DNA of 63,650 nt, filler included, from Reticulomyxa filosa (taxonomy: Eukaryota > Protista > Foraminifera), in NCBI GenBank assembly GCA_000512085.1. It is 21 parts of 21 records of this genome, joined end to end, with 100 filler letters (N's around TTAATTAATTAA, not from the genome) between each part and the next. Parts side by side here need not be neighbours in the genome. Positions count along the whole stretch, not along the records: positions 52,629 to 54,839 come from ASPP01002127.1; 20 more parts are not named here. One strand, 5' to 3'. The notes under the pieces were generated by a model. It did not search any database, had not been told where the DNA came from, and worked only from the letters and a program-made list of their open reading frames with translations. Position numbers and translations under genes: made by a program. This document shows positions 1-54,939 of the stretch, piece by piece; the first letter of the stretch is position 1, and every line of letters starts with the position of its first letter.

Positions 1-1067
1 TTATATCTTGCATCAAGAAAAGATATTTAGTAATGATGAATGGCGATCAATATGACTGTTTTTTGGATAAACTCTTATTACTTTTCATTATCGTTAAAGT
101 GTAAGAATAATAAAAAAAAATAAATCAAAAAGACTCCATTTTTTGATCAAAATTTTATAATTTTGAATGTACACTAAAAGATAATTAATATAGTCAAATC
201 ATACAGTATTTTATTTGAACAAAAAGAGCATGATAACACACTTTTCTTAGTCAACAACATTTTAATTTAGAGTTGCCATTCCAGAAATAATATTGAATAT
301 GTTTTTGAAAAATATAATAAATTTGTTTAAAACAAAAAAAATTCATTTATTTCTAAGATAGAGATGGATATTGAAAAGATCTTTAAATGTCAAAACATAC
401 ATTCTTTTTTTTTATATTCAAGTTTTTCTTATCAAATTATCCTCCGTTTTTTTTTTTTGCTGTCAAAGATATATCATATATACGATCTTTGTTCATATTT
501 TTTTTATCGTTACTTTAATGTATTAAATGCAAATGCTTCATAACTTTCTTTTTTTGAAGTGTATCATAGTTGATTTAATTGTATTAATAGCAAAAAGAAG
601 AAACACTTAGAGCTAGCATCATTTGTAACCTACATGACAAAATTTCCCTTTTACAAAAATAACACATAGTCAATATTAATTTACTTTGATGACGCCAAAA
701 ATTTTTTCAACATTTTTTAAACTTTCCATGTGTGCCACCACTTTTTCTGGGATGGTAAATTAAACTGGTGAAAAGATATGTTAACAAAGTAAAGACTTTG
801 TAATTAATTTTGACAGAAGTTTGAAAAAACAGTCAAGTATGCCAGACATCGATGAAAAACAAGTTTTTCGTTAAAAGAAAAAAATTACAGCAAATTTAAC
901 TGTAGTATCATAAATTTCACCCTTTGACAAGAAACACACGTATATTATCACTAGACAAAATCAAGCAAATTTGTCATTAACTAATAATTTTTCGAAACAC
1001 GATGTGCTTTGTGTTGTGTGTTTGAAGTGTCTTATTGTCGTTTATGTTTTCTCATTTTCCAACGTTC

Positions 1068-4000
1068 CTAATCTGTAGTTACAAGTAAAGGTTTGTATTC
1101 CTCATTAACCAATCCACTAATGGTTGTGTTCTTGTTTGCAGCAAACCATTGACAAGCTTTTTTGGGTGACCACTTGTGATTGAACTTCCAACACAACAAA
1201 ATAAGGAACGAAATCACCACACCGAAAAGAGCCAAAATAACCAGCTTAGCTGATTTGGAAGACCTATTAACAACGTTGAATTGCATCTCGTCCGCTCGAA
1301 TTCGGAAGACGCCCATATCATTCAACTTTATTGCTTTGGTTTCATATCCGCACGCTTCGTAAAAGTTTGCAGAACGGTTGGCATAAAATAATACTTTGTA
1401 CCAAGATTTGTCATCATCAAGATCGACATTCTTACCTGCACGATAGCCTCCATCCACATGGTTTGTCATCCAGCACAGGCGATCATCGCCCAGTACATCA
1501 AATTGATCACAATGCTCTTTTGCAAAATCTACAGTTGGGTCTGGTGAGAAACCAATCCATGAGATAAAATGACGTCCCCTGGATAAAAGTTTGCGTGATA
1601 ACTTTTTAACTGCATACCATACCTTTTATATTTATGTAGATAGTATTTTTTCAACCCTATGATTACGAGCGCAGTAAATACATAAAAACAAATGAAATAA
1701 TTCAACAGTTATTATGCAAGCGTACCGTTTTTTCGTTGACAACAACGGAAAAGTCGCCTGATTGCGTTGGATCACTTAAAAAGGTTAACAGACGATTATC
1801 GTTTGTGAAAGAGCCGACGTAAATGGTTTCACAATCTCGGGTTTCGCAAGCACCGAAAAACAGTGGCATGTTAAAATCAGCGTCGCCAATGTAAGTTGGA
1901 CAATTTTCCATAATGGCATCAAAGTCCGTTTTATCGGAATACTTTGCCAAGTAGCATGGAACAAAGCCCAGGTTTTCAAGATTTCCAATCGAATAATTGT
2001 GAACAATTCCTGTCGGATAGCAATCTCGTGTTGAAGGATGAATGTGAATTTCCTCCAAGAGATCTATTTCATCATTTGATTATGAATGAATATTAATGTA
2101 TTAGCATGTTCAATGTCAGAGGAATAAAATACTTTATACAAAAAAAAAAAAAATTATGCACATAACAATCTAGTCTTGCCAATAGTTTTTTACGGCGCAA
2201 GGAAAATCGAAATCCGTCGCAAAATGGGCCTTCAATCCATGGAGGAAGATCAACATCAGTGGTTTCAAGAGGGCTGGAATCCCCCGTGGTCAATGGAGGA
2301 CCAGATGGGAATGTTTCGTTACTGTCAATGTCGAAGGGAGTTCCTCTCGTGCTCTCTGGTTCCTTTGTAGTGAGTGGTCCTGGAAGAGTTGGTTGAGTAG
2401 GTCGTTGAGTAGGTTCGTGAGGCCATCCTATTGTGGTCTCTACATCTTCCTTTGTGGTTTCCGAGTGTGGATGCGGTTGGGTAGGTTCCGGTTGGGTGGG
2501 TTCTGGTTGAGTGGGTTCTGGTTGAGTGGGTTGTGGTTGAGTGGGCTGAGTGGGTTGAGTGGGTTCTGGCTGGGTGGGTTGATATTGCGTGGGCCCGACT
2601 TCAGTTGTTTCCTCTGTCTCATCCGTGGTTCTTGGGTTATGTGGTTCAGGTTGAGTGGGTTGGTGGGGGCCTGATTCTGTCGTGTCTGTTGCTTCCTTCG
2701 TAGTTTCAACTGAATCAGTGGTTTCAGGATGTGGTGGTTCAGGTTGGGTGGGTTGGTGGGGACCTGATTCTGTGGTTTCTACACCTACAGTGCCTTCATA
2801 AAACGTCGTTTCGTGTGGGGGTTGCGGTTGTGTGGGTTGGTAGGGACCTGATTCTGTGGTTTCTACACCTGCAGTGCCTTCATAAAATGTCGTTTCGTGT
2901 GGGGGTTGCGGTTGTGTGGGTTCGTGAGGGCCAGATTCCGTGGTTTCTGCTGTTTCCGTGGTCTCTGTTTCGTCCGTGCTTCTAGTGGTTCCTTGTTGTG
3001 GAGGGTTTGGTTCGGTGGGCTGATGAGGTCCCGACTCCGTCGTCGTCTCAACTGTCTGTTCAGTACTTCCAATCTCTGTGGTTTCCGAATGCGGCGGTTG
3101 TGGTTCGGTGGGATGATTTGGGCCAGATTCCGTGGTCTCAGATGCCTCGTTTGTAGTTTCTGTTTGTGGAGGCGCTGGATCCGTAGGTTCACGAGGGGCA
3201 GGAGTTGTCTCAACATCGTTGCTTGTTGTTTCGATATACGTGGGACCTACAGGGCCTTCATAAAAAGTTGGTTGCGGACTCCAGTCGCTCTTTGTTGTTC
3301 CTTCTATGCTTGTGGTTTCGTCTTGCGGATTGGTGGGCTCTTGTGGATTGGCTGGTTGAGTGGGATTATTTGTTTCCGATTCGGTAGTCTCTTGTGCTTC
3401 CGTGGGTTCTTGTGGTTGGATTGGTTCATTTGCTTCTGATTGAGTGGTTGATTGGTCTTGTGGGTTTGTTGGCTGAATGGGGTCATTTGTTTCCGATTCC
3501 GTTGTTTGCTCTTGTGGCTCCGTTGGGCCTTCTCGTTGGGTTGGCTCATTGTCTTCTGATCCCGTCGTTTCATAAGGCGCTGCGTCTTCGGCAAAGGTCG
3601 GCTGTGAGTACGTGTATCTTCCAGAATCGGGACTTTCCGTGGTTTCGTCCGCCGGACCACCATTGCCTGGGCTTTCATTATACGTGGATTGCGTTGCAGA
3701 GTTCGGAGCGGAGGCGGACGTCGAGGAAGCTTGTGAAGGATTCGATGTGGTTGAACTTGCTGTATCGGATGGTATCGCTGTCGTGACTGAACTCGCTGAT
3801 GCGCTCGTTGCAGTGCTGTCCGCAAAGGAACCGCTGGTCGTACCCGATGAGGCCAGGGTGGTTACGACGACGTCGTGACTGTATCAGAATTACTGGTTGC
3901 CGCCACAGAGGTCGCTATAACTGTGGTGGAAGCGGACGATAATGCGCTTGTCGTTGCTGGCGCTGAGGTAGTCGCTGTTGCTGCTTGCGATGAGGTAGTC

Positions 4001-6635
4001 GCTGTTGCTGCTTGCGATGAGGAAGTAGTTTGCGCACTGCTGGCTGCTGTGGTCACCGCACTGGCCGTTGTCAATGGACTGCTATAGCCTTGCAAGCGGT
4101 GGCGCAATGGCGTCGTGTTGAGCTCTTCCCATTCTGCTGATCCACTGTCCGAAGAAAACAATGTTTCTGGCAAAGAAATGTTGTGATAGTGGTAATTTTC
4201 ACACGCCCACTCTTCTGCCTCAAATTCAATCAAGTCATAGCGTACAGTCAATCCGCAGGGTAACAATTTTGCATCGTCATCCAATTCCCACATTACATTA
4301 ATTTGAACCGCTTTCAAAAAAAGTATACGTATATATAATTAATATTAAAATTCTTATTTATGTGTATTATTTATATTCGTACATATGCATATACAAATTA
4401 AAAAAAAAAATACACACGCACAATTGTTGAGAGTAGAATTAGGAATGTCCGATGCATCAAATTGCCATCCCAAGTCCAAATAAGTGCTTGTCAAGTCTTC
4501 ATCTTGTAACAACAAGAAGCCGGTTTCAGCAAAGACATGGACCCCTTTTCGGTAATTAACCCCAAATAAAATGCTTTCCAAAGATAGGAACATGTACTCA
4601 TTAACGACATCCCAGACTAATCCCATTCCAACGCCTTGACAAAATCCATGGCATCCTTCCAAGCCAATAGAAAAGACGAAGACAAACCCTTCGGGCAGTA
4701 ATCCCTCCCACCAGTCAATGGGCAAGCCTACTTCGACCGTGACATTGACATCAATCTCGATGCCAATCTCTTCTACAATTGTCGTGGTGGTTTCCACTGC
4801 GTCAGGGGTTGGCAATACAATGGTTGGGAGTTCTGGTAGTGGTGGATAGTCACTTATATTCAAATCCACATCAAAATATATCACTTCGTCCATATCGGTC
4901 GGAAGCGGTGGTGGTGAGTCTGGAATTTGCCATTCCAATTCCGTATCCACGTCCACTTCCACATCCACATCCACTTCCACACCAACATCAACTTCAAACG
5001 ACTCTGATTCCGAAAGGGGCAATGGCACTGGCGAGTCGTACGACTCCCATTCCAAACCCAATTCCACGTCCACGCCCACATCTACTTCGACACCCACACC
5101 TACTTCCAACTCCAACGCTGTAGTGTCCAATAGTGCTTCTCCAATCGTTTCCACTGTTTCAATCACTGCTTCAACCACCACTTCGGCCACTTCTTCCACT
5201 TCTTCGGCCACTTCTTCCGCTTCTTCAACCACTTCTTCCACTTCTTCAATCACCTCTTCCACTTCTTCAATCACCTCTTCCACTTCTTCGACCACTTCCT
5301 TCACCTCATCGGGCACTTCTTCCTCTGCCTCTTCAATCACTTCTTCGACTACTTCGGCTACTACTTCGGCTACCACTTCGGCAGCTACTTCAATCACTTC
5401 TTCCACTACCTCTGTTGCCACTTCTTCCGCGACCTCCAACACTTCTTCCACCGTTTCAACTACTTCTTCCACAGTCTCGATCACTTCTTCAATTGATTCG
5501 CTTGAATCGATCATGCTCCAATCAATCGACACACTCTCCTTGTCCCCCGATGTCGACAATGCTGCATCCGCAATGGCAACGACTGCATCTACAATTTCTT
5601 CTGCTGGTACGCTGGTCTCAAAGGCTGAATCGGATTCGGGCAATACCCATTCTATTGGTAATGAGGATAATAATGAGGATGAGGATGAGGATGACGATAA
5701 CGATGACGATGTATCACCACTTTCCGAGGACTCATCTTCTGATTCTGATTCTGATTCTGATTCTGATTCGGATTCGGATTCACTGTCTCGTAACTTTTCA
5801 GTCCAAACCGGCTTTTCGGCATCTCCTTCCTCACTCCATTCAAATGAAGCTGACACAGACGATGATGATTTCTTTGCTTCAAGTGCTTTTTTATCTGCTT
5901 GCTTCTCTTTGAATAACGTGGTTTGGTAATAAAACAAATCGTCGCCAAACACTGTCACTGGATCCATCATCATGCAACTGTCTTTGTTCTTTTGGCGAGT
6001 CTTAAATTCTCGGTGTTCTTGTTGCAACATGCTCAGCTTTTTCAATTCAAGCATTTGCTGACCAAGCGCTTTTTTTTTAGTTGCCATTTCATCCGTTAAC
6101 AATTCCACCTTGTTTTCTGCTTGCCATTGTTGCCATTCGAATTCCACTTCTGACCACAAGTTCTTCGCTTTCTCACTTACAAATGCACCTTTACCTTTCT
6201 CTAAATACTTTTTTTTTTTTTTGGATGTATGAAAAAAAAATGTATACGTGCTATCACTGTACGCCCTTTTGTTTTGTTTCAAAAAATGCACAAGGGGGAA
6301 ATTTTTTTTTTTTTTACCTTCCAATCTTCAACTTTGGCTCCCCATACTTGGTTCACCCATTCACAATCATTGGCCAAAAAATCATAAAGCAAGTATTCCA
6401 CCAATTTATCGTGCATTTTTTCACTCAAGAACTGCGTTGCTGCATTTTCGTTTATTGTCATCGCTTCTGTCCATTTGCTCAGTTTCTCACCAAATGCCTC
6501 CTTTACACCTTGTTTAAAAGACTTTGCATCTTTTGCAAACGTATTACGCAGTTGTTCCGGAACTTTTGGAAATTTTGCTGCCTCAGAGCAAAATATCAGT
6601 ACTAGTGTACAAGATAAAATTGACCAAAACGTCAT
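1068..6635 (-). CDS. Large multi-exon secreted/type I membrane mucin-like protein (~1,700 aa): signal peptide, acidic E/V-rich repeats, S/T-rich and P/T/E/Q-rich repeats, Cys-containing globular domain, TM helix, short cytoplasmic tail
   Basis: Signal peptide MTFWSILSCTLVLIFCSEA at 6635. GT-AG introns at ~6317-6200 (acceptor uncertain), 4421-4311, ~2166-2064 and ~1722-1623; the last three join in phase. Open frame 3883-2093 with no start codon until 2293. One 1-nt frameshift near 3870. TM segment LVILALFGVVISFLILLCW near the C-terminus. Confidence 0.7.
2400..3480 (-). repeat. Coding tandem repeats: (EPTQP)n, TTESGPH(Q/E)PTQP units, and an 84-bp (28-aa) duplication starting at 2761 and 2845
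   Basis: Directly visible repeats such as ggttgagtgggttct and two copies of gacctgattctgtggtttctacacct. Confidence 0.9.
5140..5790 (-). repeat. Coding acidic repeats (EEVIEEV/EEVAEEV heptad-like, poly-SE)
   Basis: Translation of ORF 4354..6324; repeated cacttcttc and tctgat units. Confidence 0.9.
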
Positions 6636-7610
6636 TTTATTTGTGAGATACTGAAAAAAAGAAAAAGGATATATTTATTTAAAAACTCCGTTTAATTACT
6701 AGTTTAATGTAAATGCCACATTAAATTATTTACAATAACGTCTACATTTTTCAAGGAATAAGAACTGAAAGTGAGAACAAAGCTTCAATTGCTTTTAATT
6801 TAGCTATAATAATAAATGAAATGTTATAGAAAAGTTACTATGAATATACTTTAGAATTAATTCGCATTGTAGAAAGAGTGCACACTGTCACTAAGTGTAA
6901 TACAAAGTTTACTCTTTGAGTTGTTACAAAAAAACGAAAGCAAATTTAAATAATAAAAGATCCAAATGACAACAAGAAATAAAAGATTAAGAAAACGAAA
7001 ACATAAAGAAAGAATGCAATGAACAATTTTTTGTGATACAATTCTTAAAATGTTGAAACTTTTTGAATAAAAAATATACTTTCTAAATTTATATTAATAT
7101 GTGTTAAAAATCAATTTAATGATTTGAATTAATTTTGATAATTAAATTTCAACATCTGTGATTTGTTATTTTTTATTTGTTTATAAATAAAGAAAATATA
7201 AATTGAAGATATAACTAGTTGTGCAGAAACATTAAGTACGAAATTGGTGTATTTGAACAGATTTCATAGAACAAAATCAAATAAAAAGACAATGGAAAAC
7301 GCAATGAGACAATGAAAGAACAAAATAAATAAAGAAAATATTTAAGCAAATTTTATGAAATTTGAATATTTATTTGAACGCTTTCAACATTAGTTTAAGA
7401 AAAAATTCAGTACGAATGTCGATTATATTTTGTCTATTATTGTGCAAGTGCAAACATTAGAACTGAAGTCGATATATAGTAAGAGCTCACGTTGGAATCA
7501 ACAAACAATTTTTGACTTATTTTTAAATGATATAGTAAAAAATTTCTGTAAAATTGTTATCACGTAAAGAATAACATGTTATCATATAGTCTTTACTCGA
7601 TATAAGTATA

Positions 7611-8079
7611 CAGTTGCGACAAAAAAAAATTATACAACCCTAAAATATGAACTTTTTGTGTTTCTAACAAAAATTTTAGTATCAAATTTTGATTATTTTT
7701 TCTGGTTTACTGGATATACTTTTACACTTTTATAAGTAGTTTGTAAAAACAACAAACAAAAATTTAGAAAAGTTGTTGTAAGAAAAATTTTGCAAAAATA
7801 ATTGTAAGTTAGAAGTTTTTATGTTTGACTTGCTTTAGTTGCGGTCAATATCTACATCAATGTGATGTAGAGATTTTGCTTCAATTACAATCATTTTTGA
7901 AATTTTTTTCTTCAAGAAACTTTTCTAATTTTTTGTTTATTGTTTTTACAAACTACTTATAAAAGTGTAAAAGTATATCCAGTAAACCAGAAAAAATAAT
8001 CAAAATTTGATACTAAAATTTTTGTTAGAAACACAAAAAGTTCATATTTTAGGTTTTTCTAATTTTTTTGTCGCAACTG
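7611..8079. mobile_element. Tc1/mariner-type MITE, 469 bp, ~195-bp terminal inverted repeats, TA target-site duplication
   Basis: TA|CAGTTGCGACAAAAA...TTTTTGTCGCAACTG|TA; arms ~7611-7807 and ~7885-8079 are near-perfect reverse complements; no transposase ORF. Confidence 0.88.
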
Positions 8080-8951
8080 TAGTAAGTAAAAGCTATTCTA
8101 ACTTAGCATCACACGTTGTTCTAGTAAAGAAAAAATTTTGTTCATTGAGAATGCGTATTGATTATTTCAAATTAAGTCAAGTAATAATAATATAAATGCA
8201 CACTTCATAATATAATGATTCGATGAAAAAACTGTCGAAACTCGATACCCGATCAGTATATCTACATGTCACAATATGTGAAGAATATAGTCATAAAACA
8301 GTATTTATCACTTAAAATATGCTATATAACCGAATATTGTGTGCGTAATTACCAGAGACATTCCAACGAATCATAGTACTAATGTTTGGCGGCATGTGGA
8401 TGTCCATGTGTATATCGATAATGTATTGATTGCAACATAAACAGAACAACACATGAAAATATTCAAAAAAGCTTAAACAGTTCACAAAATGCAACGTGAA
8501 ATTAGCAATATAATTGTGAATTTCTAAAAAAGAAATTCTTTATTTGTCTATATTCCTTTTTCTGATATTACGTGACACAAAAATACAGTTTGAACTATTG
8601 AAACACTAAACTATTGCGTCCAATACAAAATGAACCATTCATTGTTATGCAAGATTGCTCAATATCATTGTTAAAAATTGGAAAATGTGGTTGCAATTGA
8701 GTCAAAAATAAAAAAATTTATGAAATAATGTCTTGCATATTTCTTTATTTTGTTTTGTTTGACCAATCACAATGAAAACAATTGTGTTAATATGCCAAAT
8801 GTTGCTTTTTGCATAGAGAAAGTCGATTATCTTCATAAGGACGGACATATTTCTCCCACAAATTCTTAGTTTTTGGGAACCGGAACCGGTGTTATTGTTG
8901 CTGGTAAGAATGAAATTGTAATTAAAGAAATGGATTTAAAAAAATTAAAAA

Positions 8952-10400
8952 CTAGGTTGTCTTTTGGACTTCATCTTGATTTTTGTTTTGTGTTATATCA
9001 TTCAACAAACTATCAATGCTATCAGTTGTATTAGTCGTCACCTTTTCTTCATTGTTGATGTCTCTGACTTTCTCGCGCATTGTTTTTCGCAAATTCATTT
9101 GTCTACTGACCAACCGAGCATAAATGCCATTTTTGGCCACTAGCTCTTCATGTGTTCCTTCTTCTGCAACCTGACCGTCGTCAATGACACAAATCTTGTC
9201 GGCATTCACCACTGTGCTTAACCGATGAGCTACTAAAATCACAGTACACTTTTGCTCAGCAATTGCTTGCTCTAACGCCGCTTGTACAAGTGCTTCTGAT
9301 TCAGCATCTAAGCTGCTTGTGGCTTCATCTAAAATCATCAATTGTGGTTTGCGCATCAGCATGCGCGCCAAGCTTACTCGTTGCTTTTGGCCTCCACTCA
9401 AGCGTGTTCCTCGTTGTCCTGTATCACACATCCGTCCCGAAGGATATATTATTTTATTTGACATAAACACATAAAAAAATTGTGTGTGTGTCCTTTTTGT
9501 CTGTGTACGTTTATGAACATACCAATGCGCGATTCATACTTGTCATCAAAACTTTGGATAAATTCATCAGCATTTGCTAATGTGCAAGCACGCTTTAAAT
9601 CTGCGCTTGTGTAACGATCAACGCCGTAGGCAACATTGAACTCAATAGTCTGGCCGAACAATTCCGTGTCTTGTGACACCAATGCCATTTTATCTCTGAT
9701 ACTGTATACATTGTACTCACGCATATCCACTCCATTGATGGTAATCCTTCCCTGCGTCGGATCGTAGTATCGCAATATCTATGCATTGTGTTTGCAAGGC
9801 AACGCAAAACAAGCACAATTCAGCAAATGGAAAAAAAAAGAGAAGAAGAAAAGAAAAAAAGTATAGACATAAGCAACCGCACTCTGCATTACTCAACTAG
9901 TTTCAACAATGTGGATTTGCCGGTGCCACTCTTTCCTACCAATGCCACTGTTTTTCCTTTTTCAATTGTCAAATTGATTCCTTTCAATATTTCTTTGTTT
10001 GGTTCCATTTGATAAACAAATCGAACATTTTCAAATCTGATGTCACCTTTTGTACAATGTGTTTACATAAACATAATATTGTAAAATCACACACACACAC
10101 ATGTAATGAGACAAGAGAGAGAGAGAGAGAGTTTGAACGTACCATCAATGGTGTCGAGTTTTTTGCCCTGCTTGTTGTCGATCAATTCAATGGAAGGATT
10201 GGAATCGAGCGTTCTGAATATATGTTTAGCAATGAACTTACTCCGATCCAAATTTGGAAATGTACGTCTCAAGGTCTCGAAATGATGTTGCGTGCGCCAC
10301 CAAAAGTTTCAAACGTAAGAAGAGATCCTACCGACAAAAACGAGCCGGCCAAGGCAGTGCTAATCTGAGTCAGTTTTCCATGAGTCGCGTTACCGTCGGC
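8952..10400 (-). CDS. ABCB (MDR/TAP-type) transporter, C-terminal part with nucleotide-binding domain; multi-exon, 5'-partial
   Basis: Walker [10 protein letters not shown] (~9911-9937), RYYDPTQG, Q-loop VSQD, signature LSGGQKQR, Walker [12 protein letters not shown]-loop VAHRLSTV. Confidence 0.9.
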
Positions 10401-10507
10401 TTGCATTGCATTTTTTTGTTGAACGCTTTGAAACAGCAATAGGCCCCCTATATAAAAAAAGTCGGTGATTGTTATGCAATCGTTCTAGCCAACCAATCAA
10501 CAGTAGG

Positions 10508-10538
<31 letters not shown>

Positions 10539-10549
10539 AAAAAAAAAAA

Positions 10550-10649
10550 NNNNNNNNNNNNNNNNNNNNNNNNNNNNNNNNNNNNNNNNNNNNTTAATTA
10601 ATTAANNNNNNNNNNNNNNNNNNNNNNNNNNNNNNNNNNNNNNNNNNNN
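10550..10649. other. Artificial contig spacer N44-TTAATTAATTAA-N44 (first of 20; others start at 12972, 15426, 17018, 19420, 22242, 23358, 27277, 36541, 37961, 39700, 45476, 46602, 47828, 49742, 50968, 52529, 54840, 56552, 58234)
   Basis: Identical 100-nt blocks containing a six-frame stop linker; base composition changes abruptly across several of them. Confidence 0.99.
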
Positions 10650-10829
10650 CATTGCATTGTTTGCAATTTCATTACAAATGCAGCAAATTAAAGTGTCCAG
10701 TTTTTGTGAGTCATTTGTCAATGAAACCCAATCTTTATTGTAACAGTCAGAAAAGGAAAAGATTGAGCTTTTGTTTTCTTTGCTTTTTTCTTCTTCTTCT
10801 TCTCTTATTTCTGCTTCAATTAACAACAT
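10650..10829 (-). CDS. N-terminus of a RING/TRAF-type zinc-finger protein (partial)
   Basis: ATG at 10829; CYNKDWV...LICCICNEIANNAM runs into the contig end; CxxC start of a RING. Confidence 0.55.
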
Positions 10830-12830
10830 TAGTCTTACTTCTATAATAAAAACTTTATTTGAAGTTCAAAACTTTTTTCAAGTTTAAAAATCAGTTACTC
10901 CAAGTACTCTTACAAATAATACGTAATGAATATAATTGAAAATTTTAAGATCAACTTTTTTATTACAGCAAATTTGGTATTAAACGGAAAAAAAACTGAA
11001 GAGGATATGCCTGGAGATGAGAACGGAATGAGATTTTATTGGTTTTTTTTGCTTACCGTTCATTTGCAACAAGTAGAACTTGACACACTTTTTTTACAGC
11101 TCTATTTCAGAAGCTTTGTAGAGGGAATCTCTTTCTTCATAGTGAAATGCTTTCTACATAGTTGTCTTTTTTTCTAGTAAAACTCGAAATGTTTCCAGTT
11201 CTTTTTCAGTAATGTGTTGTATAAAAATTTGTGAGCATATCTGATAAACCTTATTCCATGTTTGTATCTTACAGAAATTTACATAATGGTATATGATATT
11301 AATGATTTAAACGTGATTTTTTTTGCAAAAAATGTTCACAACTTCTTTTGCTGTAAAAAGAAAAAATAAATTGTAAAAAAACGTGTCATGTATGTGCTTA
11401 TTCTTGAACCAATACATTATTTTTTAAACAAATATCTTATTTTGCTTTGTCAAATATTGAAAAAGAAAAATATAAATATGCCATAATCAATACACTTTTT
11501 TTCATATCAATAAAGTAAAAAAATTAACATAATATGAACAACCAACATTACGTAATATAAAGTATTTTATTGTCTGATTAATGGTTCAAATACAGAATTA
11601 TTAAATTATTAAATTATTAAATTATCAAAAGTTTTCAAATGTTTAACAAATAACTTTAAAAGAATTATCAAACAATTGTTGTCATATTTGTTGTGCTACT
11701 CTTAAACCAAAGGACTTTATGTGTTCTGAATCTATTGTTCATACTAAAAAGAAATTAGGTTTAAATGTTTATTTTTCATGAAGAAAATCGATTTTCTTGC
11801 AATATACTGTATTTAAAATAATAAATAATATCATACAAAGCCAGGAGTTGCAAAATATAAAAATAAAAACTGTTTGTCTGAAGTAAAATTGATTTAATGA
11901 TACTTGAAAAATTATTTAAAAAATCATATGTTGTTTTCAATTTGATATTTTCCATTATTTATTTTAAATATGTGTGCAAATATACTATTGGTCAATTAAC
12001 AGCATTCCATCCCTGCAAGATAATGCAAAATTTATTTCCTCCAAAGAAAAAGACTTGTAAAAACATTTTTAGATTCGACTATTTGGTGTTTAAAAATTCC
12101 TGTTTGCATGAGACACTCCAAATTCTGATTTCTGGAACAAAGTCATTATACGTGAGTATAGCGCTGTTTTTACTATTTATTGTGGATAAATATTTAAATA
12201 ATTTTAAAGTAATTACAGACTATTATAAATAAATCAATTGAATTAGGAAAAAAAATACTTATTCAATTTCTTAAAGATAATTATACTTTTAATACGGATA
12301 TTGTTAATTTGACACAATTTAAGCAAGTTCCAATTTATTCAATCTAATTTTTTATAGTTTTTCATGCTTCATTAATGTTTGAAATATTTAATAAATTGAT
12401 TCCCAATACATCAATTCCTTTGTATTGTATTGAAACGATAATGTGAATAAGTTTTTGTGGTTCTGAGCAAGTTAATGTGTAATACTTTGATAAGAGCAAT
12501 GTAAAAACGCTGCTTCAATTTGAGGTAATTCTTGAGAAATTTTCAAATTGATTATAATTTTGCCAATAATATTTTTTCTCTATGATTATCACCTCCAAAG
12601 ATAATATAAATATTTTTAGTATCTTGTTGTAATATGATTATGCTTTCTATATGATAATTTCTGGACTATTTTCAATAAAATATTTTATTTTTTTCAATTA
12701 TGTGCAATTTTTTTGCTTCATTAACCAAACAAAAAATATCAATGTAAAATAAATTTTTAGTTTGTCTTTTGTTTTTTCAAAAGGATCCTTTTTTAAAAAA
12801 TTCTTTAAAAACTTCAGCAACATTATCAAC

Positions 12831-12971
12831 ATGGGCAATCGAACTACAACACAAAAACAAACTAAACAAAGTCAAGATCTTATTACCCTCTTTCAAACTT
12901 TGAAGGAGTTGCCCACTCGACTTGAAGAATCTCAATGTGTGTTACACAAACACGAACTCATCATTTGTGGA
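12831..12971 (+). CDS. N-terminus of an N-myristoylated Kelch/beta-propeller-like protein (partial)
   Basis: MGNRTT myristoylation-type start; FQTLKELPTRLEESQCVLHKHELIICG resembles a Kelch blade ending in ICG(G). Confidence 0.55.
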
Positions 12972-13071
12972 NNNNNNNNNNNNNNNNNNNNNNNNNNNNN
13001 NNNNNNNNNNNNNNNTTAATTAATTAANNNNNNNNNNNNNNNNNNNNNNNNNNNNNNNNNNNNNNNNNNNN

Positions 13072-14139
13072 GGCAAAGAAGGAATCGATGGCCGCAAGCA
13101 CGGCCGTGTTTTCATCGGGGCTGCCCACGGTCAAGCGCAGGCAGTGTTGTAGCAACGGGTGGTAGCCATGCAGGTTTTTCACCAGAATGCCGGCCGCTTT
13201 CAGCGCGGCAAACAGCGCCGGAGCATCCGGCACCCGCACGGTGACAAAGTTGGCCTCGGACGGGAACACCGTGCACTCGGCACGCGCCGACAGCGCATCG
13301 GCCAGGCGGCTGCGCTCGGCGCGCAATTCGGCGGCCTGGGCGTCGAACACGTCCAGATGGCGCAGCGCAAACTTGGCGGCGGCCTGGGTCAGCACGTTCA
13401 CGTTGTACGGCGGGCGCACCTTGTCCAGTTGGCGATCACGTCCGGCGCGCCGGCGGCGTAACCCAGCCGCAGGCCGGCCAGGCCAATTTTGGACAGCGTG
13501 CGCATCACCACCAGCCGCGGGTGCTGGCCGGCCAGGTTCATGAAGGTATCGTCGGCAAACGCCTGGTAGGCTTCGTCCACACCACCAGACCGGGGGCAGC
13601 GTCGAGAATGGCTTCCACCTGCTGGCGGGCAAAACGCGGGCCGGTGGGGTTATTGGGGTAGGACACGAACACGACCGCCGGCTGATGCGCGGCGATGGCG
13701 GCCAACGTAGCGGTGAGGTCCAGCGAGAAATCGTCGTTCAGCGGCACACCGACGTAACGCATGCGCGACAGCTGCGCGTTCATGCGGTACATCACGAAGG
13801 AAGGCTCCAGCGCCAGCACCACGCTATCGGCCGGCAGCGCCTGGGTCAGCAGGGTGATCAGCTCGTCGGAGCCGTTGCCCAGCACCACGTCGGCGGCGGC
13901 GGGGATGGCAAAGGCGGCTTTCAGCGCGTCCTTCAGGCCATCGCCGTGCGGGTCGGGTAACGGTTCAGCGCCACCTCGGCCAGTGTCTGGCCCAGCTCGG
14001 CGCGCAAGGCTTCGGGGAGTCGGTACGGGTTTTCCATCGCATCGAGCTTCAGATAGCCCGTTGCGTCGGCAACGTGATAGGCCTGCATGGCCAGAACATC
14101 GGGGCGGAACCACTGCTGTATAGACATTTTGCTCGACAT
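13072..14139 (-). CDS. hisC: Histidinol-phosphate aminotransferase (three apparent frameshifts at ~13955, ~13580, ~13430; stop lies beyond the contig end)
   Basis: [71 protein letters not shown] distributed over consecutive frames. Confidence 0.93.
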
Positions 14140-14231
14140 TTCAATACCGGCGGGGCCGGTTGGAACTGCCGGCAAAGCCCGACGCAATCAATTCACAGAG
14201 CCACCATCCTAACCCGATTCGGCGCGGGCGG

Positions 14232-15209
14232 CTACTCGATCAGACGCACCTGGCCGGCCCACGCCGGCGGCAGCTGCAGGCCGAATCGCTGCAGCGCACC
14301 ACGGCTGAACAGTAACTGCCCGCTGCCGCCGTTGAGCGGAAACAAACTGCCCGGCTGGCGACGCTGGAACAGGATTTGTTGCACCAGCCCGGCTGCCAGC
14401 CGCCCCTGGTCGCGACCGGACAGCACCAGCCCACCCACGGCCTTGTCCGCCCCCACGGCGAAATCCCAGAACGCAAACAGCGGCAGCGTGCTGTTGGCCG
14501 CGGTCCAGGCAATGACCTCGCTATCCGGCACCACCTTGCCGTTGGCGTCACGCAGCGTCTGGTACAGGCCGGTCCAGATCGCCTGATAGCGGCCTGGCGC
14601 CTGGCTGACCTGCCGCTGCCAGTCGGCATAGTCGATGGCGCGCACCAGATCGATCTGCACCTTGCCGTCCTGCAGGCTACTGGCCCGGCCGAACAGCTCT
14701 TCCTGGATCACCTCCGAGGTCAGGTCGTTATCGAACAACAGCAACACGCGCTGTATGCCCGGCACCAGCTGGCGCATCAGGCTGACGTTACGCCGCACCA
14801 GCGGCCGCTCCAGCACGCCGGTGACGTTGGCCGCGTGTTCCTGCAAGTAATGGCGCGGGTTCTGGTTGATGCCGAGGTACACCACCGGCGTTTTACTGCC
14901 GGCCAGCCGGGCGCCCACAAAGCGCAGCGCGGCGTCGTCGGCTACCAGTACCAGGTCGGGCTGCAGGCGCTGGATCTGCACCAGAATCTGCGCGGCACGC
15001 GGCTCCAGCGTGTCGCGCGGCTGACGCTTGCTGTCCAGCTCGGCGTAAAGGAAACGCACCTTGCCGCCCAGGCTGGCCATCAAGCTACTGCGCCACGCTT
15101 GGCTCCAGGCATAGCCGGCATGGTAACTGTCTACCAGCATGACGCTGGGTGTCGCCTGGGCCCAGGCAAAAAGAAAGGCCAGACAGAGTCCGGCCAGATG
15201 GCGTGTCAT
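14232..15209 (-). CDS. Periplasmic ABC-type substrate-binding/sensory protein
   Basis: Signal peptide ending AWAQA; DSYHAGYAWS, ADDAAL, PVVYLGIN, NVTGVLE, GGLVLSGRDQG motifs typical of ABC_sub_bind-like proteins. Confidence 0.75.
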   Translation of the reverse strand: MTRHLAGLCLAFLFAWAQATPSVMLVDSYHAGYAWSQAWRSSLMASLGGKVRFLYAELDSKRQPRDTLEPRAAQILVQIQRLQPDLVLVADDAALRFVGARLAGSKTPVVYLGINQNPRHYLQEHAANVTGVLERPLVRRNVSLMRQLVPGIQRVLLLFDNDLTSEVIQEELFGRASSLQDGKVQIDLVRAIDYADWQRQVSQAPGRYQAIWTGLYQTLRDANGKVVPDSEVIAWTAANSTLPLFAFWDFAVGADKAVGGLVLSGRDQGRLAAGLVQQILFQRRQPGSLFPLNGGSGQLLFSRGALQRFGLQLPPAWAGQVRLIE

Positions 15210-52628: not shown

Positions 52629-54800
52629 AATTGTTCAATGTTTCTTCGTATTTTTGTGGTGTCCAATCATTGTTTTTTTTATCTTTGGATTTCATTGCTG
52701 CGAATTTTTCAATATAACTGTGAATTTGTTGTTTTGTAAATGGCCATAAATACATCATTGATGTTGCCATATTTTGATTTTGGCTTGCACCGATTAAAGT
52801 AATATTAATATCTTCGTCGTTTAATACTTTACTTCTACAAGTAACAATCACTTTTGCATTCCATTGATTTAAATGGAAGCGGTCATAGAAATATTTGTTA
52901 TTGTTTTCACTTTGACTATATTTATCAAATATTTCATCAAAACCATCCATAATGAACACAAATGATACTTTTTCACGAATTGCGTTCATACTTTCCTTAC
53001 CGATATGTTTACCTTGTAAGACTTGTAAAATGATATCTTTTTCATTTTTTAGATGATAAACCTTTGGAAATGAAATATAAACAGGAATGGGTTGTTTTGA
53101 ATCATTGATATAATTATTCCATAATATTTCTTCCAAATGACGACAAAATATACTCTTTCCTGATCCTGATTTTCCTTGTATTATCATTGCTTTTCTTTTT
53201 TGTTCTTCACTTTTTTTTTCTTCTGATGTTTCTTTTCCCTCTAAAAATTTGATGACATGTTGATGACAATCAAATGTATCATTTTTTTCATTCTCTTCAC
53301 CATCCACATGTGGATACTTATTTGCTTGTAATGGAATATAAGTTTCCAACGCTTGCGCAATTGCAATATCTTCTTCCATTTCTTGTTTCCTTGATTCTTG
53401 TAATAGTAATGCGAAATCAGCACAACTTGCCAGATTTTTATCTCCAATAAGATATCGTTTATAATATTCATATAAAATAGCATAAATAGCTTTTCCTTTC
53501 ATTTTTTCTGGAGTGAATGTACATAATTGTTCATATACAAATTGTGCCATTTTCAATAACACATTATCATTAATTTCCAATTCATTTTTAGTTAGTTGTG
53601 GCGGCTTCAATATTCCTATATCCAAGTGTGATTTATAACGATTTGCTAGTTTTTGTATACCTTTATCATCTATCCACTCACAGATAATGTCATTAATTTT
53701 TGTTAAAGTTTCATCGCTTGCTTGCTTTAGATCTTCTTCTTCTTCTGAATTCTTTGGTTTCCACGCTCGAATGTGTTCATAAAACAAATGACTTAATTTT
53801 GGATTTTCAATTACCGTGTGTCCCTCCAATGTTGTAAAATTTTTTAATGTTGCTTGCATCTCCACATATACGTCATGTTTTGGAACAAATAATTTAATAT
53901 TGTGGAATCTGTGGTGTGTCTTTGATTGTCGTTCAAAAAAGTCTTTATCCTCAGATACGATTAAATTAAATTTCTCTGCTTTCTTCATTACTGCCACTGC
54001 TGTTTGTAATTTGGTTGCATTATCACATAAAATTGTAAATCTTCCAACATCAAACACTTGGTTATAATCTCCATTATAATCACATTTTATCTTTTCTAAT
54101 AGTCTTATCTTATCTTTTACTTTAGGTGGCTTTACCACCGTTATCAAGTACTTTTGTAATTCAGCCACCAAATTGATTAATTCATTATCCATCATCGCAT
54201 TCTCACTTCGAGTAATTAAATCTTCCAAACTCGTTGCATGTTGCCTTATCTTTTTAGCTTTCACTTCATAAGATAATCCCGATTTGATTAGATAAAAGCA
54301 TTGATAATGCTTATCTTTCACAGAGATAAGATTATCATTGGAACTGATGGAATGTTCTGAATTAAAAATCATTGCTTTTACAATTGATGCGACGCTGGAT
54401 TGTCCACAGTCTGGACAACTATAAGATGTCTTTTCTGAGTTGAATGAAATATCACCAAATCCAAGGCTCACCCATACTGGTAACTTTGCTTTTGCAGCTA
54501 AACAGTCCATATTTGCACAATAACCTTGTACATTAATTCCAGGTTTAGTTTCTCCAATTTCTGCTTTTTCCTCTTCTTTTTTCAATATATCTGAATCTTG
54601 TCCTAATTCAATATTTCCTCCCTCCCTACTACTTGTTTTCTTTTTTTTTTCATCGCCATCGTCAATACAACAAATGCATGTTATTACACGCATATGTCAA
54701 AAAGAATGTGACAAAAAAGAAAAGGAAATGGCGATAGTCTCAACCTGTTCGATTTTGTTCTCTTCAATATAACCTTGAACAGCAATCTGTGTTTTGTTAT
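52629..54800 (-). CDS. NLR-like STAND protein: Zn-ribbon-like domain + RelA/SpoT-like nucleotidyltransferase + helical linker + NACHT NTPase; partial at both ends
   Basis: PGINVQGYC..C...CPDC; KVKDKIRLLEK..DYNGD..VFDVGRFTI...HHRFHNIKL...VEMQATL...SHLFYEHIR; Walker A GKSGSGKS (53175-53152), PIPVYI, Walker B FIMDGFDE, sensor-1 VIVTCR, LWPFTKQQI; a short upstream exon at ~54800-54745. Confidence 0.85.
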
Positions 54801-54939
54801 CTAAAAGTGATATACACATATATATATATATATATATATNNNNNNNNNNNNNNNNNNNNNNNNNNNNNNNNNNNNNNNNNNNNTTAATTAATTAANNNNN
54901 NNNNNNNNNNNNNNNNNNNNNNNNNNNNNNNNNNNNNNN

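Follow-up and report, generated by a model that had tools for sequence, protein, structure and literature searches.

A 2,211-base contig of the foraminifer Reticulomyxa filosa, ASPP01002127.1 (assembly GCA_000512085.1), is predicted to encode a RelA/SpoT-type (RSH) synthetase domain joined in a single reading frame to a NACHT NTPase. We propose that it carries a fragment of a gene for a STAND (signal transduction ATPase with numerous domains) protein resembling the nucleotide-binding oligomerisation domain (NOD)-like receptors (NLRs). The gene would belong to a lineage-specific family of approximately 90-130 gene models, in which the RSH domain acts as a ligand-switched effector of growth arrest or death, and we regard this as a fairly probable explanation of the locus. 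The contig occupies positions 52629-54839 of the window, that is, the whole stretch of 63,650 nucleotides under analysis. At 30% G+C, the gene is as AT-rich as a first-pass annotation of this DNA had described, and the host is the rhizarian protist that it had named (R. filosa, with RFI_ proteins in the same assembly). The piece has a single long open reading frame (ORF), of 688 codons, which runs on the minus strand between 54693 and 52630 and is open at the low edge of the piece. The RelA/SpoT-like and NACHT parts share one unbroken stretch of 2,011 nucleotides (54639-52629); thus, the RSH-NACHT fusion is a property of the DNA and independent of splicing or of any gene model.

The RSH synthetase domain, apparently of a Tas1-like type, covers residues 154-343 (53665..54234, minus strand), an assignment that draws on Pfam matches of paralogs, sequence profiles, an AlphaFold2 model and individual residues. 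Among the paralogs, the RelA_SpoT family PF04607 reaches 30.2 bits in P0001 and 27.9 bits in P0016, both above its gathering cut-off of 27, and 26.4 bits in P0029. When the window copy alone was searched against the sequences of the PDB, the sole match was Tas1 (E 0.63), the (p)ppApp synthetase that Pseudomonas aeruginosa delivers by type VI secretion (6OX6), and a foram-family profile of 37 R. filosa sequences and one environmental relative again matched only Tas1 (E 0.017). Residues 1-480 were searched exhaustively against 1.84 billion representatives, and the 102 hits comprise the foram family and, beyond it, a tail of distant non-foram proteins that match at approximately residues 140-340. 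RelA_SpoT was matched at E <= 0.01 in ten of the 15 distant proteins scanned with Pfam, two of them above the Pfam cut-off. The partner domains of the distant relatives are eCIS_core, Phage_Mu_F, NUDIX or TPR, often adjoining RelA_SpoT, and one relative, P0115, sits on a prokaryote-like contig of 235 kb. Aligned with hhalign, the foram profile and the distant-RSH profile agree at 99.4% (E 3.9e-21, 158 columns), and the distant-RSH profile in turn finds Tas1 (1.5e-21), RelP (8e-11) and Rel (5e-5) in the PDB.

The modelled structure points to the same enzyme class. The first-pass annotation had suggested a RelA/SpoT nucleotidyltransferase fold and a Foldseek comparison as the check on it, and the AlphaFold2 model of residues 41-480 (pLDDT, the predicted local distance difference test, 89.6; predicted template-modelling (TM) score 0.80) bears the suggestion out. 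At E <= 1e-3, Foldseek returns 47 matches, and every one of them is an RSH synthetase; Tas1 ranks first (4.4e-7, TM-score by target 0.63). In VIA-align, whose alignments span model residues 114-303, equivalent to residues 154-343 of the protein, the highest Z is that of RelP (13.5; root-mean-square deviation 3.7 over 163 residues), followed by Rel (13.3), RelQ (13.0), Tas1 (11.9) and CapRel (11.9). RSH structures as a whole score 10-13.5 against approximately 8 for generic Pol-beta-fold transferases such as Cid1, Pol mu and terminal uridylyltransferases. The donor-site and catalytic residues K193, R197, K201, D215, R218, E278 and Q280 align with those of Tas1 and RelP. The two acidic residues singled out earlier as catalytic, D215 (54049-54051) and E278 (53860-53862), are kept in 82 and 77 of 84 paralogs, respectively, the exceptions at E278 being mostly gaps; R218 is kept in 80, K193 in 81, R197 in 76 and K201 in 81. 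Residues 154-343 thus appear, from model and profiles together, to form a RelA/SpoT-type pyrophosphokinase fold fused to NACHT, and pyrophosphate transfer is predicted from this fold and its conserved catalytic residues. The RSH domain is also the best-conserved part of the protein, with a mean identity to the window copy of 79.6% compared with 64-65% for the other parts (a beta-rich domain on its N-terminal side, a helical linker and NACHT) over 53 paralogs, which argues for selection on the enzyme.

The motifs quoted in the first-pass annotation are all present at the residue numbers it gave. In the RSH domain these are KVKDKIRLLEKI (residues 191-202), DYNGD (205-209), FDVGRFTI (214-221, including D215), HHRFHN (260-265), VEMQATL (277-283, including E278) and HLFYEHIR (302-309). 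The NACHT NTPase at residues 503-664 (52702..53187, minus strand) is intact as had been claimed: PF05729 scores 38.6 bits on the window copy against a cut-off of 26.7, related STAND models give weaker matches, and Walker A (GKSGSGKS, residues 507-514, 53152-53175), Walker B (FIMDGFDE, residues 580-587, 52933-52956) and the sensor arginine (VTCR, residues 617-620, 52834-52845) are all in place on the minus strand. NCBIfam models returned nothing meaningful for the window protein.

Among RSH enzymes, the foram domain appears closer in sequence to Tas1 than to the others. Tas1 is the sole or best PDB sequence match at each level (single copy, family profile and distant profile). The two have in common the K-x3-R-x3-K-I-x2-DY-x-GD stretch and further donor-site and catalytic motifs, including the D-x-[GA]-R-x-T-I spacing of the Mg-binding Asp and the Arg, for which the canonical form is D-x-x-G-x-R; their identity is only approximately 18-20%. 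They differ in setting, since Tas1 is a secreted interbacterial toxin with a separate immunity protein and the foram domain is built into a STAND protein, and in the acceptor loop, where the Tyr of Tas1 is mostly His in the R. filosa family. Tas1 makes (p)ppApp and depletes ATP. By this affinity, we rank (p)ppApp with ATP depletion as the most likely product, with tRNA modification and (p)ppGpp behind. A different chemistry on the same architecture has to be considered here: the enzyme could make (p)ppGpp, for example against engulfed or intracellular bacteria, or pyrophosphorylate tRNA 3' ends as CapRel and FaRel2 do, and we judge this unlikely, if not markedly so. The structural Z does not separate the RSH subgroups (Tas1 versus RelP/RelQ), and the (p)ppGpp synthetases RelP, RelQ and Rel, at 13.0-13.5, score no lower than Tas1, with CapRel level with Tas1. 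Interference with engulfed bacteria is what Dyrka et al. proposed for the fungal proteins (PMC4986451), and other toxic small alarmone synthetases (toxSAS) pyrophosphorylate tRNA 3' ends, the tRNA-targeting ones acting in abortive-infection immunity (PMC11782079). What speaks against another chemistry is the constant first place of Tas1 in the sequence searches and the K-x3-R-x3-K...DY-x-GD...D-x-[GA]-R-x-T-I spacing, which is that of Tas1 and not the canonical one.

The window copy is one of many. The RSH domain is nearly complete in 93 proteins and at least partly present in 128; these counts take in split models, partial fragments, metagenomic cluster representatives and environmental relatives, and for R. 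filosa they lie on the upper side. The family thus comprises roughly a hundred gene models (approximately 90-130) in a fragmented assembly, and the expansion that the first-pass annotation had suspected from two copies is real. The same annotation had expected a C-terminal sensor of WD40, TPR or HEAT repeats, and WD40 is what the paralogs contain. The full-length paralogs P0056 (1,368 residues) and P0057 (1,734 residues) end in WD40 propellers, and at the P0008 locus (L001, 1626-7330), the NACHT ORF is followed, on its own strand, by an ORF with 16 WD40 repeats. This locus is apparently one gene split into two database models, of 833 residues (beta-RSH-NACHT) and 988 residues (WD40), with an N-terminal exon at L001 1626-1916. 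The layout of the family is accordingly an inconstant set of N-terminal helices, a beta domain with four cysteines, RSH, a helical linker, NACHT and approximately 16 WD40 repeats. With the part of P0056 from NACHT to WD40 as query, approximately 65 R. filosa proteins were found, and all those with the N-terminus present carry the beta-domain/RSH/linker module. The tripartite layout is therefore read in two places, effector and NOD in one exon of the window copy and the WD40 sensor in P0056, P0057 and L001. One paralog, P0001 (RFI_08856), has two tandem beta-domain and RSH modules (residues 26-391 and 397-836) ahead of a single NACHT; in its first module several conserved positions are altered, for example DYNGD to DDADD.

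An NLR-type reading of this layout appears reasonable on architecture, and the functional role is a proposal. In the mechanism we envisage, the WD40 propellers and a nucleotide-bound NACHT would keep the protein monomeric and off. Binding of a ligand to WD40 would open the protein, and NACHT-driven oligomerisation would then assemble the RSH domains or free them from the flanking beta domain and linker. The RSH domains would use ATP as the pyrophosphate donor for an acceptor that bears adenine. Given the affinity to Tas1, the product would most likely be (p)ppApp, draining ATP, the alternative being blocked tRNA 3' ends. The affected cytoplasm would locally stop growing or die.

Several points weigh against this proposal. 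RelA_SpoT PF04607 scores 18.2 bits on the window copy itself, below the gathering cut-off. The acceptor-loop Tyr that stacks on the base is replaced by His in 68 of the 84 paralogs, which leaves room for an acceptor other than that of the known enzymes. The window copy lacks the sensor and the true start, which lie beyond the contig edges, and need not itself be intact. NLR repertoires typically shuffle their effectors, whereas here one architecture is kept fixed in approximately 100 copies. The WD40 repeats of L001 are only approximately 74% alike; on this ground, we rejected the idea that the sensor has the near-identical WD40 repeats of fast-evolving fungal NLR sensors (PMC4986451). For eukaryotic RSH-NACHT proteins, the literature searched yielded no data on activity, ligands or oligomers. 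Finally, allorecognition at network fusion is an equally open trigger. This last point leads to the possibility that the family is not made of defence receptors at all, serving instead self/non-self recognition at reticulopodial fusion or other signalling in a giant multinucleate cell, which we hold to be distinctly unlikely. NACHT-WD40 proteins do control heterokaryon incompatibility in fungi (PMC4986451, PMC3689799), and the sequence specifies no pathogen ligand; on the other hand, the WD40 repeats do not belong to the class that is highly conserved and rapidly reshuffled, and the mechanism overlaps that of a ligand-switched RSH effector and differs in the trigger alone.

The gene is truncated at both ends by the 2.2-kb contig, on the 5' side as well as on the 3' side. 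An in-frame TGA stands two codons 5' of the annotated ATG, ORF residues 1-18 are without conservation in the paralogs, and paralog homology begins at approximately residue 20-40. A short upstream reading frame ends in IAVQGYIEENKIEQ, a segment that aligns with ITVQDSIEEKNTQQ of P0009 and also with IEVQSS... of L001 (the P0008 locus). The segment 54744-54640 has 105 nucleotides, starts with GT, ends with AG, is in phase 0 and contains an in-frame TGA; the remaining AG dinucleotides within approximately 15 nucleotides downstream break the frame. In the paralog models, the equivalent segment has been read through into a Phe-rich and then a Lys-rich peptide, which corresponds to a T-run followed by an A-run. 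Given the phase-0 GT..AG segment and the read-through at the same place in paralogs, it is plausible that 54745..54786 (minus strand) is a small exon encoding the tail of the N-terminal region of the paralogs, that 54640..54744 is the 5' intron suspected in the first-pass annotation, with the annotated start codon at 54693 inside it, and that the sequence from 54639 onward is the main exon. This last (52629..54639, minus strand) would encode the beta/zinc domain, the RSH synthetase, the helical linker and NACHT, and paralog alignments reach its residue 688. The upstream limit of the small exon would be either an AG acceptor at 54788-54787 or, if coding continues, the TA repeat. At the contig end lies a (TA)15 microsatellite (54810..54839; Tandem Repeats Finder), which is not homologous to the upstream coding sequence of paralogs and which probably caused the assembly break; the true gene start would lie beyond it. 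The database protein for the contig (P0002, 616 residues) ends at residue 616 (window 52846), and the ORF and the paralog homology run past that end to the contig edge at residue 688.

These features bear on whether the window copy could be an unexpressed member of a repeated family, either a dead fragment or one produced by the assembly. A 2.2-kb contig that ends in a TA microsatellite and lacks both gene ends, an annotated start inside a probable intron, and an assembly that often splits the gene models of this family or carries them through introns would all suit such an explanation. We consider it quite improbable in view of 670 uninterrupted codons in DNA of 30% GC, of catalytic and NTPase motifs that are all intact, and of an identity of 82-87% to paralogs with no frame breaks.

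The domains that flank the synthetase are less familiar. On its N-terminal side, at residues 41-153 (54235..54573, minus strand), the AlphaFold2 model contains a beta-rich domain with four conserved cysteines (C59, C64, C93 and C96), whose columns are invariant or nearly so in the family; folded alone, the domain gives a pLDDT of 89.6. Against the PDB, no fold counterpart was found (best Foldseek E 0.16; best Z 5.5 in a wide VIA search). The rows at that Z are cupin- or jelly-roll-like, and we do not assign the domain to the cupins. In the ESM Atlas, the domain matches uncharacterised eukaryotic clusters at TM 0.71-0.74 with a feature score of 0.96. The clusters come from Rotifera, Porifera and Mucoromycota, and some are fused to ubiquitin, RING or ADP-ribosyltransferase. 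This may be an undescribed, widespread eukaryotic domain. On the other side of the synthetase, residues 344-480 (53254..53664, minus strand) are helical in the model and form a linker domain with no match in Pfam or the ESM Atlas. Many paralogs (P0003, P0007, P0008, P0009, P0012, P0014; L001 1626-1916) have in addition an N-terminal helical region, inconstant across the family, that carries ...EEELKKQLEQNNGNVSxVIE... and has a UBA/CUE-like look; we do not claim a CUE/UBA identity for it, the only support being a Pfam CUE match at E 0.14.

Outside R. filosa, environmental relatives exist at 35-50% identity (L003 and L004), and more than one strain therefore carries the module. In L003 (ERZ27276640, 48% GC, 38% identity), an in-frame TAG interrupts the homologue at approximately 1473-1581, and the same frame continues after it with a segment resembling the acidic linker that precedes NACHT; this TAG could be a sequencing error, a pseudogene mutation or a reassigned stop codon. 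L004 (ERZ25039517:contig_125688) is chimeric: positions 1-4650 are AT-rich (25-35% GC) and hold a homologue of the beta domain and RSH broken over two frames, whereas 4651-14389 have 58-60% GC and hold bacterial genes. The bacterial home for the beta-domain and RSH module that this contig suggests was therefore discarded, L004 being a chimera joined near 4650. For the NACHT-to-WD40 chassis, the nearest relatives are the metagenomic proteins P0194 and P0195 (28-29% identity), followed by the Mortierellomycota proteins P0196 and P0200 (Linnemannia and Mortierella, 25-27% identity). These fungi belong to the same broad group in which the Atlas finds the beta domain.

For the enzyme itself, the nearest relatives that could be detected are of another kind: Tas1, and RSH modules linked to the Pfam domains eCIS_core, named for contractile injection systems, and Phage_Mu_F. 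This raises the question of whether the piece might be bacterial contamination with a toxin gene, as toxin-like nearest relatives outside the forams, one of them in a prokaryote-like context, might suggest. Contamination is exceedingly improbable: the 30% GC matches the rest of the R. filosa family, intron-like interruptions stand at conserved places, more than 90 paralogs occur in the assembly of the same eukaryote, and the NACHT-WD40 chassis is nearest to the metagenomic and fungal proteins just named. A different history would have the forams capture a bacterial Tas1-like toxin domain and wire it, together with the 4-Cys beta domain, into approximately 100 NACHT-WD40 receptors whose activation would produce (p)ppApp, deplete ATP and thereby kill or arrest the cytoplasm; we regard this full scenario as possible and on balance doubtful. 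NACHT was absent from the 15 distant non-foram proteins scanned with Pfam out of the 102 hits, and a common origin with the fungal fusion is therefore unsupported.

The combination of an RSH domain with NACHT and WD40 is already known from fungi. RelA_SpoT was described in 2014 by Dyrka et al. as an N-terminal effector of fungal NACHT-WD40 proteins (PMC4986451), and a 2025 survey of Sordariales treats RelA_SpoT-NACHT-WD40 as canonical but rare, with approximately 17 cases among several thousand NLRs (PMC12258605); in both papers the enzyme counts among the direct ('class 1') effector domains. The fungal proteins have the same order of enzyme, NACHT and WD40. They differ from the foram proteins in belonging to another supergroup (forams are Rhizaria) and in lacking the setting of the foram enzyme, which is flanked by the 4-Cys beta domain and the helical linker; and the type is rare in fungi, whereas R. 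filosa has one fixed architecture in approximately 100 copies. In bacteria, the anti-phage bNACHT proteins follow the same effector-NACHT-sensor logic, and alarmone synthetases are listed among their effectors (10.1101/2022.07.19.500537); these proteins are prokaryotic, and the PADLOC models gave no match to the window protein. CapRel (7ZTB), a fused toxSAS-antitoxin of phage defence and a structural match to the foram model, can be likened to the foram layout in that its RSH toxin is held inactive in cis and is freed by a sensor domain on infection. CapRel is small and bacterial, however; it senses through a pseudo-zinc finger, targets tRNA, and has neither an NTPase nor repeats. The literature searched contains no report that links Reticulomyxa and NACHT, nor one of this layout in foraminifera. 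The novelty claimed in the first-pass annotation is thus overstated, as the architecture is catalogued in fungi and has synthetase effectors as a counterpart in bNACHT. New here are the lineage, the size to which the family has expanded, the affinity of its enzyme to Tas1 and the additional, uncharacterised beta domain; the last two, like the truncation on the 5' side, had escaped the first-pass annotation.

The family extends NLR-like receptors with enzymatic effectors to Rhizaria, and the nearest detected relatives of this immune-type effector of a eukaryote are toxin-like modules of apparently bacterial origin. It also exposes an uncharacterised beta/zinc domain that is found in rotifer, sponge and Mucoromycota clusters as well. 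With many near-identical natural copies and a very well-conserved enzyme, the function of an alarmone-synthetase effector in eukaryotes becomes testable through one small domain. Should the scenario of a captured Tas1-like toxin domain prove true, the family would provide the first immune effector of a eukaryote to work by (p)ppApp synthesis and ATP depletion, analogous to the depletion of NAD+ by TIR domains.

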